Origin: Haliotis rufescens
Lineage: Eukaryota
Length of the DNA stretch: 64,000 nt
NCBI RefSeq assembly: GCF_023055435.1
Contig: NW_025964223.1
Span: 49,352,001-49,416,000, forward strand
Direction of reading: 5' to 3'
The translations under genes were made by a program, and so were the position numbers. Of this stretch, positions 5,204-63,200 are shown in pieces (position 1 is the first letter of the stretch; each line of letters starts with the position of its first letter). The notes under the pieces were generated by a model. That model was not told where the DNA came from. It did no database searches and saw only the letters and a program-made list of their open reading frames with translations.

Positions 5204-8200
5204 GTCAGTCAGTCAGTTTCTTAGTTTTAACGACCCCTTCTAGCATAGCTAATTTCGGGGTCGGGATGGCCCCGTTCTAGTAGATAGGGAGAATTTGAAA
5301 AATAAAGTCCTGATAATGACGTGAATATTTGAGATATGCTAAGGTAGCCACCCAAAAAAATGTAAGGTTTTATGGGGCAGGGGAATCGGGTGGAGGGCTG
5401 GGTGGTTGGTGTGTTGGGACTTGGCGTAGCGATTTATTTGGAGTATTTATAGTTGGTTATGTTTTGTGTGGTTTGTGTAAGAATTAGAAATTATTTGATA
5501 GTTTTCTTAAGTTGTTTTTGTGTCACGTGGGTTTTGTTAGGAAGGATAGTGGGCAGTGAGTAAATAACGATTTGGGATTTTAGGGTGTTTTTTGTGTGGT
5601 TTTTGTTGTTGTTGTTGTTGTTGTTTTTGTGTGGGTTTTTTAAATGTCTTGGGGGAGGTGCGTTTGGTTTATATCCGTTAGGAAGTTGGATGGATGATTG
5701 TGTCGCTTTTGTGGGTGGTGTTAGATTAGTTTTATGATATCTGTTTTTGTGATATAATTTATGATTGTTTTTTGTATTTGTGGGGGATTGTGGGGGGATA
5801 GGAGTGTGTGGATAGTTTTTGTGTATTTTGCATCTAGTGTGTTGATGTACTGTATTCTGTGTGGTAAGTAGAGTGTGCACGTGTAGAATAAGTGCTGTAT
5901 TGTTTGGGGAACTTGACATGTGGGGCAGAGCCCAGTGGAATGGCGAAAGTTTAATTTTGTGATGCCTACATATAGCCTGTTTAGTGCGGATTGTATATTA
6001 CGTGAGTTGCTAGAAAGATTTACTTTATTGATTTGTTTATTTATTGTTTTGTATGTCCATGTGGCGGGGGAGGTGTGCAGTTGTTTGAAGTTTTCTTGGG
6101 TTATTAGTTTATTTATGATGGATTTATATTCCTGTTTGCTGTATGTCAGTGGGTAATTAATATGTTTATTTTTTGCTGCTTGTTTGGCCGCTTGATCTGC
6201 CTTTTCGTTTCCCGTGATCCCAATATGTGAGGGTACCCATGCAATATTAATTTGTTTATTCTGTTCTGTTAATGTTTTCGTTAAGTGTAGTATTCGGTGT
6301 AGTAGATGTGGCCTGTTTGTGTAATTTCTGTTTTTAATTGATTGTATTGAGCTAAGTGAATCTGTGAGGATTAGAAGTTTGTTTTGTGTTATTGTCTCTG
6401 CCATTTTGAAGGCCATATAGATTGCTGTTTTTTCGGCGGTATGTATGGATAGGTGGTTTGGGATGCGTGCTGATGTGGTGGTTGTGTTTGGTTTGGTTGT
6501 GTGTATTGCGAAGGCTGTTGTGTGGTCCGTCCGGTTGTGTGACCCGTCTGTGTAGATGTATGTCCAGTCTGGCCAGTGTTGTTGTATGTAATCCATTGCC
6601 ATTATTTTTTGTTGGTGCTTGTTTGATGTTATTTTTGTGATGTTTGTTAGACCAGTGTCAGTATGAGGAGGTGGCAGGTGATATGAGTAGTCATGAATGA
6701 CAGGGGTGAGTTTTATGTTTTTAAGTTTGTATGTTTTGAGAAGGTGGTTTAGCCGAATGGTGAATGGGAGTCTTCGTCTTTTTTTGATTAGTTTGACTTT
6801 CTGTCTTAGTGGTAGATTTTCTGTTGTTGTTATGAGGCTGCTTAACAATGGGTTTGTGCATGCTGTAGCCCAGTAGTTTAGTGTGATTTGTTTGCGTTTA
6901 AGGGGGAGAGCTATTTCCCCAGTGAGCTTTAAGAGAGATGTGAGTGCTGTGCCTGATATTGTACCTAGTGAGATTGATAGTGCTTTGTATTGTATTGAGT
7001 CTAATTTCTTGGAGTCTGTTTGTGTGAGTGCGTCGTATGCGGGTGCGGCGTATTCTAACTTGGGTCGGATGAGTGTTTTGTAGACAGTAAGTAGCGTGTG
7101 CTGGTCTGCTCCCCAGCTTGTTCCCCGTATGCTGCGCATTAAGTTAAGATCATGGTTGCATTTTGTGATGAGGTGTTTGATATGGGGTGTGTATGTTAGG
7201 TGTTGGTCGAGTATTAGGCCTAGAAATTTTGTTTGTGTGCTGTAGTTGATTTGGGAGTTATTTAGAGTTAAAGGTGGGGAGTAGTTTTGCATGTTAGGTG
7301 TTTTGAAGAGTATGGCTACTGTTTTGTCAGTATTGATTTTAAAACCCCATGTATTTGCCCATGTGTCAATATCATTGAGTGCTTGTTGGATATGTTCCTG
7401 CGCTGTACCTAGTGTTTTGTGTGAAGTCCAAAGTGATGCGTCGTCTGCAAATTTAGCTGGTTTGATTGTTGAGCGGATGTCTGTGAATATGTCATCGATC
7501 ATAAGATTGAAAAGTGTTGGAGAAAGGACACTGCCTTGAGGTGTACCGTTTTGGATGGGATGTGGGTCAGAAAGTGTGTTGTTTACTTTTACAGTTATGG
7601 TACGATTTTTGAGAAAGTTGTGTATGAAGTTTAGCATACGTCCTTTAATATTTTTGTTTGACAATTTAGTGATTAGGCCGTCATTCCAGATCATGTCAAA
7701 GGCTTTTGAGAAATCGATGAATACAGCTAGGAGATAGTGTTTGTTAGCCTGGGCTACTCTGATGTCGTGTTCAATTCGAATGATGTGATCTAGGGTGGTT
7801 CTGTTTGGCGTGAACCCGCTCTGGTCTGCATGTAAGAGATTGTTTGAGTCTATGTGGTGTTGAAGTCTTTTCTTTATTATTGTTTCCATGATTTTGCACA
7901 TATTTGATGTGAGTGATATGGGTCTATATGATTCTGGGTTCTGTGGGGGTTTGTTTGGTTTTTTGATTGGGATTACCAGTGCTTGTTTCCATGTCGTAGG
8001 TATTTGAGCGGTATCCCAGACTGCATTGAGGAGTTTCAGTAGAAGAAGTTTTCCGTGCATGCTGAGTTTTTTTAGTAAAATATAAGTTATGTCATCTGCT
8101 CCTGGAGCAGACGACGTGGTTTTGCTTTGGAGAGCGTGTGTCAGCTCGTGTATTGTTAAGGGTGCGTTGTAGGGTATATGGGCTTGGGGTGGTTGTGTGA

Positions 8201-60293: not shown

Positions 60294-63200
60294 TTACTTA
60301 CTTACTTATATTAGGAGATTTTACGTGCGCTTTCCGACTGGAGCGTATTTCGCACACGGGCCCGGCCGGGCCATTTAGTGAGATAAAAGGGAAGCAAGAT
60401 GTGTGGAACCAAGGAGGGGGGTTTAGTGGTTGCTTATATAAAATTTGGAAATTTTGAGATTTGGAAGACATGCCTTGGGGGAGTGGTTGGGACTAAGGGA
60501 GTGTGTGGGGGTGAGTTGTTGTTTTTAGATGTTAGTTTTGGTGGTTTAATGAAGTTTTAGATACGATTAATTAGGTCTGTTTTGGTTAGGTAAATGCCTA
60601 GGGCTTTGAAGTTTTCTATTTTATTTTGAGGGTTTAGGATTGCTTCTAGGGTAAGAGCTTTATTTGGATTTAGGTTGGTTTGTAATGTTGTACGGTGGGT
60701 GAGGTAGTGGGTGCAATGTAGGAGTACGTGATCTATTGTTTCTGGGTGAGTGCAGTGTGGGCACTTCCCGTTTGCGTGTTTTTTTAGTTTTTGAAGGTGG
60801 TTATTTAGTTTGGTGTGTCCTGTTTGGAGTTTGGTGATTATTCTATCGATTTTTTTGGAGGGATGGAGGATTTTTGGTTTGGTGAGGGTTTTTTTGAGGA
60901 CTTTTGTGATTTGGGTGTTTGTGTTTTGATAGAGGCTATGCCATTTTTGGGTGATTTTGCGTTTGTTGATGCTTTTGATCTCTGATTTACTTATTGGTAG
61001 CTTAAGGCTTATCTCTGGTATTTTTAGGGACTGTTTAGCGGCTTGGTCGGCGTTTTCATTTCCGTATATTTCTACGTGGGCTGGTATCCAGGTGAGTACT
61101 ATGTTTTTGCCTGCCTCTGTTAATTTATCTATACTTTTGAGAATTTGGTTTATTAATTTGGGGCGGTTTTTGGTGTTTTTGCTTTGGAGGGCCTGGAGTC
61201 CACTTAGTGAGACTGAGAGTATTAGGATTTTATTTTGGTTTTTAGTGTGTTGGCTGTGGAGGGCCGTGGCGATACCCATGAGTTCTGCGGTGAAGATGGA
61301 TTGGTTGTTTGGGAGTCGGAAAGATTGCGTTTTTCTTATTGGTTGGGCTATGTGGACTCCGAAACCTGTGTGATTTGTGATCGGATCAGCAGATCCATCT
61401 GTGTAGATGTGACACCAATTTGGCCAGTTTTGATGAATGTAAGCTAGTGAGGTGGATTTAGCTATGTTAGGGTCAGTTTGTTTGTTTATTGAGTTGGCTA
61501 AGGATGTGTCTATTTTGGGGATTTTAAGTTTTGGGGTGAATACGTTGGATTTTTTGCAGTTTAGTTGTTGGTTCCCTATTTGGTGTTCGTTGCGGTAGTT
61601 TATAATACGTTGGGAGATTGGAGTGAGTAGAGGGTGTTTCCTAGTTAGTGCCTGGTTTTGGGGACGTATGTTTTGGTTTAGGAGATTTTGGAGAAGAGGG
61701 TTTGATTGAGAAGCTGCCCAGAAGTTTAGTGTTAAGTGTTGCCTACGTAGGTTTAGTGGCATTTCTCCTGTGAGGGCCTGAAGTGACGTAAGGGAGGTGC
61801 CTTGTTGGGTACGTGTGACTAATTTGAGGGCTTGGTATTGTATTGAATCTAGTTTTTTGGTTAAGGTTTCGTTTAAGGTATCGTATATGGCACAGCCGTA
61901 GTCTAGTTTGGATCTGATTAGGGATGTATAGAGGCTGAGGAGGGTATCTTTAGAGGCACCCCAGTTGGAGCCGGTTAGACATCTTAGTGTGTTTAAATCT
62001 TTGCTACATCTGGTGGTTAGGTTTTGGACGTGGGCATCCCAGGAGAGATGTTCGTCGAATATTAGTCCTAAGAATTTGGTTTGTTTCTGAAATTGGATTG
62101 GTTTGTTGTTTAGTTTAAGGGTAGGGGTGGCCCGTCTCATATTTTTATGTTTAAATACTATTCCTGTTGTTTTTTCAGAGTTTAGGGAGAAACCCCATTT
62201 ATCGGCCCATTGTTGTATTTTGTTTAGTGCATTCTGTAGTAAGTCCTGGGATGTTAAAATACTTTTAGAGCGGATCCAGAGGGCTCCGTCATCTGCAAAT
62301 TTGGAAGTATTTATTTTAGGGGATAAGCCATCAAAGAGATCGTTTATCATTATGTTGAAAAGTCTGGGGCTAAGAATGCTGCCTTGGGGCGTGCCGTTTT
62401 CTAGTGGACACTGGTCCGACAAGGCCTGGTCTATACCCACTGTGATTTTACGGTTTTTAAGGAAGCTTTGGATGTAGTTTATGATTTGACCTTTTAGTCC
62501 TATTTTTTTAAGTTTTTGGATTAGCCCGTTGTGCCATACCATATCGAAGGCTTTGGAAAAGTCCAGAAAGATGCCTGTTGTATATTGTTTATTTAGTTGT
62601 CCTGTTTTAATATCCTGTTCTAGACGTGCTAGGTTGTCTAAGGTTGAGCGGCCGGGAGTAAAACCGCTTTGGTCTGAATTAATTATATTGTTTTGGGTTA
62701 AGTAGTGTTGGAGTCTATTTTTTGCCATGGATTCCATTACTTTGCATAGGTTAGAGGTGAGCGATATTGGCCTATAGGAATTTGCTTGGTTGGCTGGCTT
62801 ACCGGGTTTAGGGATGGGGATAATAAGAGCTTCTTTCCAAGGGTTTGGAACCTGGCCGTTTAGATAAATTAGATTATAGAGTTTTAGTAGTGTCTGGAGT
62901 AGTTTGGGCGGGAGTTTTTTGATTATTTGGTAGGAAGTTAAGTCTAGACCTGGGGCTGTACCTTTTTTCCTATTTTGAAGTACGTGGTTTAGTTCTTCTA
63001 TTGTGTAAGGTTGGTTTATTTCTAGGTTGTTATTGTTTGGTTCTTGGATAGGTTTGGTTTCTGCCTGGAGTTTTTGTTTGAATTTATGGCTGAAGTTGTT
63101 ATTGCTACTTGTGGCCGAAAAGTGGTTTGCCAGGTTATTTGCTTTTTCGCTGGGAGTATTTGAGTTGTTTATGCTAGGCGTTTTTTTTGTTTTTTTTTAA

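Follow-up and report, generated by a model that had tools for sequence, protein, structure and literature searches.

Recurrent insertion of long interspersed elements beside the 5S and H1 start sites of a tandem gene array in the abalone Haliotis rufescens

Introduction

Position-specific integration of retroelements beside promoters is established for the Ty elements of yeast and for the TRE and NLTR elements of Dictyostelium; long interspersed nuclear elements (LINEs) of animals that encode an apurinic/apyrimidinic endonuclease (APE) are generally taken to choose their targets by short motifs at the nick site. Here we describe LINE insertions in a tandem array of alternating linker-histone H1 and 5S rRNA genes of the abalone Haliotis rufescens, starting from a 64,000-nucleotide stretch of contig NW_025964223.1 (assembly GCF_023055435.1, positions 49,352,001 to 49,416,000), hereafter called the window.

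In dictyostelids, TRE5-A, NLTR-A and NLTR-B belong to the APE-type elements without long terminal repeats (LTRs) that integrate at a constant distance upstream of genes transcribed by RNA polymerase III (Pol III), regardless of local sequence; TRE5 elements lie 40–54 bp upstream of tRNA genes and 37–41 bp upstream of 5S genes, in the opposite orientation, and NLTR-A, which carries an RNase H domain, lies 2–6 bp upstream of Pol III genes (PMC5911963). The abalone families that we call A and D are likewise inserted upstream of a 5S gene (at -45) and, like TRE5, point the opposite way, and families A', E and C' lie, like NLTR-A, just upstream of the start, at 5S -8 to -10. The abalone elements differ from the dictyostelid ones, however, in their animal host, in their I/Nimb-like build and tandem-repeat tails, in that the same families also hit a histone promoter of the Pol II class as well as non-promoter A/T boxes, and in that most copies are not placed near Pol III genes.

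The yeast element Ty3, an LTR element with an integrase, inserts a few nucleotides from the Pol III start, at the edge of the DNA covered by TFIIIB. Insertions in the abalone array likewise come close, by a few nucleotides, to the start of a Pol III gene, but the recurrent ones are LINEs, and the one Gypsy copy in a 5S gene (+14..+17) represents a single event among ~32 dispersed copies.

A third kind of comparison is offered by R1 and R2 (28S), Mutsu (5S), and Keno and Utopia (U2), which are reported to be found almost only in one target sequence inside a gene (PMC5340908, PMC4640811). The abalone families resemble these elements in that independent array copies share identical 3' junctions, in that head-to-tail copies are separated by a target-site duplication (TSD), and in that redundancy tolerates the hits; unlike them, they have 67–99.8% of their copies elsewhere, and their sites are adjacent to the gene, not within a conserved motif.

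According to a 2024 review, no transposable element insertion besides Mutsu in zebrafish has been reported within a 5S gene, and the animal examples in 5S spacers come from fish only (PMC10946416). In the literature that we searched, we met no description of LINEs directed at histone promoters. In Mytilus, fibre fluorescence in situ hybridisation has shown 5S genes that alternate with linker-histone genes, core histones being absent (PMC4106214); the abalone array has the same interspersion, and differs from that study in being mapped for insertions at the sequence level. Position-specific promoter targeting is known; its apparent occurrence in an animal LINE group, and at promoters of both polymerase classes, would be new.

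Recurrent insertion at the 5S and H1 starts

A probe across a site 72 nt upstream of the H1 ATG (H1 -72) located a single H1-5S array of ~550 kb, on one contig and one strand (49.27–49.81 Mb), with 107 intact probe copies and hence at least 107 units; we estimate the redundant unit copies at ~130–180. The right half of the array is almost clean, with a unit spacing of 3006–3010 bp, and the window lies within the transposon-invaded left part, where host segments alternate with inserted blocks. Rfam identified eight 5S genes (+) and eight histone 3' stem-loops (-) in the window, and a linker-histone open reading frame (ORF) of 187 aa adjoins every stem-loop. Four uninterrupted units and part of a fifth occupy 27450..41343 (+), each with 5S on the plus strand and H1 with its 3' stem-loop on the minus strand. 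From these we took window 30451–33395 (2945 bp) as the reference unit, to which all unit coordinates refer: 5S lies at unit 1–119 (+) and the H1 ORF at 1339–1902 (-), with its ATG at 1902. The H1 cap site, placed by motif alone, is probably the A (unit 1962) of a TCATTC motif at window 32409–32414. We analysed the window together with 100 kb on each side (264 kb in total) and mapped every break onto the unit, the junctions within the window being fixed by base-by-base comparison.

This comparison confirmed all eight host–element junctions that a first-pass annotation of the window had placed, at the same positions. That annotation had also reported that seven of the eight gather at the two gene starts, and the clustering is real: the seven fall within 90 bp of 2945 (binomial P ~2e-10, for windows picked after the data had been seen). 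It is stronger in the 264 kb, where several families contribute to it, on both strands and through independent events, with 15 of 19 insertion events lying within 169 bp of the unit (P ~7e-16). Pairs of events no more than 3 nt apart number 15, against 0.4 expected, and 11 of these pairs join different families. The remaining junction, at window 1361, does lie off the gene starts, as had been said, but it is no stray, since its site (unit 1127/8) is itself recurrent, having been hit by A' and A. The A' copy here (3' part with (GTAA)n tail, 1..1361, +) joins the host before unit 1127 and forms the right end of a nest of elements of ~70 kb that began as an A' insertion at unit 1127–1137; the left edge of the nest is at unit 1137, which gives an 11-bp TSD. 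The A copy, at unit 1128 (+), lies in the flanking 200 kb.

At H1 -72 (unit 1974), family B inserted in three independent events. Copy 1 (5204..8644, -; reverse transcriptase (RT) and RNase H, (ACTG)n tail) has unit 1974 as its last host base, and the host resumes at unit 1993, leaving an 18-bp target deletion that extends to a TATCA box. Copy 2 (57383..59300, -) has the same 3' junction, but the host resumes at 1963, with a TSD of ~12 bp; because its 5' truncation and tail length also differ from those of copy 1, we consider it a separate event. The three B copies are 99.0–99.4% alike and have different 5' junctions and tails. Their common junction lies 10 nt before TCATTC and 13 nt after the TATCA box.

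Further insertions accumulate in and around the H1 leader, including a D copy (41344..45749, -; APE, RT, RNase H, (TCAG)n tail) after unit 1947, that is, at H1 -45 in the 5' untranslated region, with a 10-bp TSD (1938–1947), and, in the flanking 200 kb, two A' copies (both -) after unit 1906, 4 nt before the ATG, and after unit 1931.

At 5S -45 (unit 2901), A and D are both inserted in opposite orientation to 5S with an identical 11-bp duplication (2891–2901). The A copy (60294..64000, -) is full length (6216 bp) and extends 2.5 kb beyond the window end; the D copy (-) lies in the flanking sequence. The positions 5S -8 to -11 have been used by A', E, C' and C, in units that carry different -10 variants: an A' copy (21842..27449, +; APE, RT, RNase H), 5'-truncated by ~630 bp, has a tail that ends before 5S -8; the 3' part of a C copy with a (CTA)n tail (11928..13804, -) joins after unit 2935 (5S -11/-10); a C' copy (+) is at 5S -8 with the TSD CAAGCATTG; and E is at 5S -9/-10. 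One E copy (+) is at 5S -10, and four others stand head-to-tail at 5S -9 (L011:2563-L012:7402, window-equivalent 66563-81402), separated by the 7-bp TSD ATAAGCA, as a small array that arose from repeated use of one nick site. Of the copies in this tandem, two are full length, a third is truncated at its 5' end and the fourth has an internal deletion. Orientation is also biased, with 9–10 of 10 H1-zone insertions in H1 sense and seven of eight insertions at 5S -8 to -11 in 5S sense.

In the rest of the array, A and A' copies were positioned by their distance to the nearest intact H1 probe, with an uncertainty of ~10 nt. By these coordinates alone, three more copies (A/A', +) lie within ~12 nt of 5S -8, one A' copy lies at ~unit 1946, and the H1 coding start contains two A copies, at ~1815 and ~1768 (1768–1771). 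Hot spots are thus also present off the known starts, at unit 1127/8, at ~1768 and at 967, after which an E copy (-) is inserted in the flanking sequence.

Independent copies of one family therefore share the 3' junction nucleotide (B three times at unit 1974, E at least three times at 5S -9/-10), and a fixed distance from a Pol III start, used by several elements with no common nick sequence, is seen at 5S only. Copies of one family at one site vary in 5' truncation, in having a TSD or a target deletion, and in tail length, so that copying within the array cannot explain the pattern; we infer that the clustering reflects insertion bias rather than selection. The only duplicate B pair (L026/L027; C445:49551623, 49579935) is 99.94% identical and 28.3 kb apart. 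The duplicated 28.3-kb array segment carries B, A and A', and a second duplicate, consisting of a unit plus a 1.86-kb A, is repeated at 4862-bp spacing near 49.711 Mb.

The Gypsy element (46830..55406, +) lies inside a 5S gene, with 582-bp LTRs that are 99.7% identical and end in TG...TA, and a 4-bp TSD, CCAC, which corresponds to 5S +14..+17. Its Pfam domains (gag-asp_proteas, RVT_1, RT_RNaseH, Integrase_H2C2, rve, Chromo) place it among the Ty3/Gypsy chromoviruses. As a single event, it cannot bear on targeting.

Spacing from TATA-like boxes

The first-pass annotation had described the insertion sites as lacking a shared target sequence. This holds for the nick itself: a common consensus sought across the sites was not found, a purine after the nick being all they have in common. 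It does not hold for the surroundings, since most sites share a TATA-like box 13–15 nt upstream. Distances below are given in element-sense orientation.

The 5S upstream box TATATGTA (-31..-24; window 30420..30427), which reads TACATATA on the other strand, has nicks 13–15 nt away on both sides: A', E and C' nicked 14–15 nt beyond the end of TATATGTA, and A and D, at -45, nicked 13 nt beyond the end of TACATATA. At H1, the TATA-like TATCA (32438..32442, -), 30 nt upstream of the probable start, ends 13 nt before the B nick. Further boxes show similar distances, with AATTTTTA ending 14 nt before the unit 1906 nick, AATAAAAT 12–13 nt before that at unit 1127 and TATATATA 13 nt before that at unit 967. 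Another box, TATTTCAT, predicts a nick at 1766–1768, and an A copy had already been placed by coordinates alone at 1768–1771. The spacing also recurs within an element: a full-length LINE of the A/A' lineage (13805..20006, -), with an A' signature at its 3' end and a body 97% identical to A, is nested in C with a 10-bp TSD, TGGTACCCAG, and its nick lies 14 nt downstream of the end of ATATAAAG in C. Among dispersed copies, one of family B (L021) has TATTTAA 15–16 nt upstream.

An 8-mer with at least seven A/T is present at 13–15 nt in five of nine sites, compared with a background of 11.9% (P=0.002). The unit contains ~14 clusters of equal or better TATA-like boxes, almost all of which are unhit; the 5S box accounts for 6–7 of the eight box-associated hits, and the weak H1 box for at least three hits. 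As equally good spacer boxes are almost all unhit, promoter boxes are preferred.

Two other candidates for a shared feature were rejected. Microhomology between tail and target (GTAA/TAAG) fits 5S -45 and -9 and fails at 1127, at 1906 and at the C' site, and TGACGT is near two sites but in different registers.

Element families and their genomic distribution

According to Pfam, ORF2 of A, A', D and the C lineage contains Exo_endo_phos, RVT_1 and RNase_H in this order, and LINE B contains RVT_1 and RNase_H; the APE-RT-RNase H order suggests an I/Nimb-like build for these elements. Tails consist of (GTAA)n in A, A' and E, (TCAG)n in D, (ACTG)n in B, (CTA)n in C and (ATCT)n in C'. A, A', D and E form one lineage (77–97% nucleotide identity), and C/C' and B are more distant (~65%), giving three lineages, of which several are active. 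The 595-aa ORF1 has no Pfam domain, none that hints at a tether, and is not known to interact with TFIIIB; the Atlas clusters closest to it consist of unnamed gag-like proteins. At one locus (C112:69184879 region, L029), a complete E 3' end with its (GTAA)n tail is directly followed by the final 44 bp of B, which looks like a chimeric 3' end, possibly one that arose by template switching.

We searched the 1.33-Gb assembly with the last 28–30 nt of each family. Family B has 15 genomic copies, of which five are in the array (four at H1 -72), A' has 60 with eight in the array, A has 97 with nine, C has 39 with one, D has 888 with at least two and E has 1618 with at least seven; of 64 Gypsy LTR ends, two (one element) are in the array. 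The array thus makes up 0.04% of the genome but holds 33% of the B, 13% of the A' and 9% of the A copies, and all tested families are enriched in it, 11- to ~770-fold over a uniform expectation. Nevertheless, 67–99.8% of every family's copies lie outside the array, those of D and E being spread over many contigs, so that nothing like the near-complete confinement of R1, R2 or Mutsu to one target sequence is seen. The idea that a guild of retroelements uses the array as a safe harbour, put forward in the first-pass annotation, is therefore retained only in part: several families are involved and enriched, but none is array-specific. A dedicated harbour is refuted, as most copies proved to be dispersed genome-wide, which is the first half of the outcome that the annotation had named as speaking against it.

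Outside the array, we examined the flanking sequence of ten dispersed B copies. Their sites are unrelated sequences, with no tRNA, 5S, snRNA or histone stem-loop within 1.5 kb; across the loci left of the window and around dispersed B, Rfam identified only 5S and the histone stem-loop, and no tRNA gene lies near any insertion in the loci examined. As in the H1-5S array, 3' ends of A', A, C, D and E also cluster at C1:42.33-42.47 Mb, C35:22.35-22.51 Mb and C46:19.44-19.64 Mb, the last of these with a tandem spacing of 1831 bp.

Possible mechanism and alternatives

We lean, if only slightly, towards an account in which the LINE nick is set by the distance to a TATA-like box, promoter boxes are favoured, a bound complex or open chromatin contributes, and the redundant array tolerates the hits. 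Several active APE/RT/RNase H lineages would strike the array, none of them recognising a target sequence, and the first-strand nick would be made ~13–15 nt downstream of a TATA-like box, with the 5' end of the element toward the box. Because a start site lies roughly 25–30 nt from its TATA box, insertions would come to lie 8–13 nt upstream of the start, as at 5S -8 to -10 and at H1 start -12; and because the 5S box is nearly palindromic, hits at 5S -45 would have the opposite orientation. Since promoter boxes outdo equal spacer boxes, occupancy of the box (by TBP with TFIIIB, or by a Pol II pre-initiation complex) or open chromatin would presumably add to the choice, and the ~130–180 redundant copies would let insertions persist and recur. 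A more specific version is conceivable, although we hold it to be doubtful: a group of animal LINEs, comprising several families that exist side by side, would take a TATA box occupied by TBP as its ruler and nick ~14 nt downstream of it, at Pol III (5S) and Pol II (H1) promoters alike and on either side of a palindromic box.

Several observations count against box spacing as the determinant. No box stands at the expected distance from the sites at 1947 (D, and about there A'), 1931 and ~1815; C, though 13 nt away from the 5S box, nicks the opposite strand; the box used by B is weak (five of eight A/T); the spacing rule as a whole rests on few sites; and units 2901 and 2935 share GTTTRCC/RATRTG (the slash marking the nick) in register, which would fit direct recognition of sequence. 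In addition, a bound factor is not needed at the hot spots 1127, 967, 1906 and ~1768, as none of these is a known promoter.

Direct DNA recognition by the endonuclease is accordingly a strong rival, even if we think it unlikely that intrinsic preference is all there is. On such a reading, related endonucleases would read an A/T box at a fixed distance, or a local motif or shape, on naked DNA; the many identical, dispensable targets would make preferred sites recur without any host factor, and the overlap with gene starts would follow from the placement of A/T boxes. The non-promoter hot spots just listed are what it would lead one to expect, as is the use by the nested A of TATAAAG within another element. 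It also draws on two motifs that occur just twice each in the unit: TTTRCCRAT (2896, 2930) is nicked both times in the same register, and GCACWSAG (968, 1948) both times immediately before the motif (N/GCACWSAG). D nicks both motif types, however, so that neither is a consensus, and the six-of-eight match of 968 with 1948 is within chance for 36 site pairs. Also against naked-DNA preference are the boxes that were passed over, for TATATATG at 2561–2568, the cluster at 443–461 and others remained unhit in 19 events, although they are stronger than the H1 box and the 5S box that were hit repeatedly.

If the general openness of chromatin at two highly transcribed genes sufficed, nucleosome-free DNA would be exposed to any element, irrespective of a TATA box, and the exact nucleotides would reflect a weak nuclease preference. 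Unrelated elements are indeed found in or near 5S (an unclassified insert of 2.7 kb at +55 as well as the Gypsy at +14..+17), and in the H1 leader and coding start the insertions are spread over ~200 bp; but single-nucleotide recurrence across families, the mirror-image sites around one box and the orientation rule would be left unexplained, and we consider this improbable. Processes acting after insertion, whether selection or the spread of a few old insertions by gene conversion or unequal crossing-over, have left traces, namely the 28.3-kb segment, the 4862-bp unit-plus-A pair and three E copies with identical tails. As the source of the clustering they are largely refuted, and we give them very little credence: different families occupy the same nucleotide, copies of the same family at one site differ in the features described above, and a promoter would not be expected to tolerate an insertion better than a spacer does. 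Least credible of all is that the families are specialised on the array as R1 and R2 are on 28S rDNA. The share of B, A' and A copies held by so small a part of the genome might have suggested it, but the copy counts refute it, with 38 of 39 C copies, 62 of 64 Gypsy LTRs and most of the 888 D and 1618 E copies lying outside, and with the other B sites being unrelated sequences.

Several active LINE families in one animal genome share insertion nucleotides beside Pol III and Pol II starts, with a measurable box spacing. A long-standing question, whether a bound transcription complex can steer target-primed reverse transcription, thereby becomes directly testable, and the array provides ~130–180 identical natural targets in which insertions can be counted. 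It also shows the one-sided decay of a tandem gene array through repeated promoter hits. Were LINEs with a TBP ruler to be confirmed, they would stand as an animal equivalent, indifferent to polymerase class, of the elements that TFIIIB guides in slime moulds and yeast, and an element with a TATA ruler would be of interest for targeted-insertion tools.

Further insertions and rearrangements

A 15.5-kb block (11928–27449) consists of three elements: C, the full-length copy of the A/A' lineage (13805–20006) nested inside it, and A', to which C is joined head-to-head. The 5' part of C (RT fragment, 20007..21841, -) and A' (+) meet at their truncated 5' ends (window 21841/21842) with zero host bases between them, and their tails face away from each other, that of C at 5S -11 and that of A' at -8. 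This junction goes back either to two insertions accompanied by a small target deletion or to a single break from which two different LINE RNAs were primed, using both strands.

The nest that begins with A' at unit 1127–1137 runs from L004:1077 to window 1361; E entered the 5' region of A', and E itself is split by 56.6 kb of other DNA. At the left edge of the array, a B copy (L023) has unit DNA on its 5' side only, from which 2.2 kb of other sequence separates it; we regard this copy as ambiguous, and its omission changes nothing.

The unclassified insert at 5S +55 (L016:8040-L017:785) is 2746 bp long, non-coding, and takes the place of 5S +56 to unit 128; nothing else in the 264 kb is similar to it, and it has no Pfam hit. 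At unit 305 (L018:7517-L019:2651), an unrelated element, LINE F (coiled-coil ORF1, RT), lacks a repeat tail and is flanked by a 167-bp host duplication (unit 305–471). Deletions within units and one duplication (window 10741/10748, L012:8332, L013:7068, L003:2062) have end points that cluster at unit 959–1096 and 1222–1232, beside a poly-C/(CA)n tract, without an inserted element there.

Finally, the 3' regions of C (window 12421–12449) and C' (L013:8506-L014:3941 region, twice) contain exact 15–16-nt copies of the H1 promoter element GGCGCGGACGTCGGAG (unit 1998–2015), where ~0.01 would be expected by chance.

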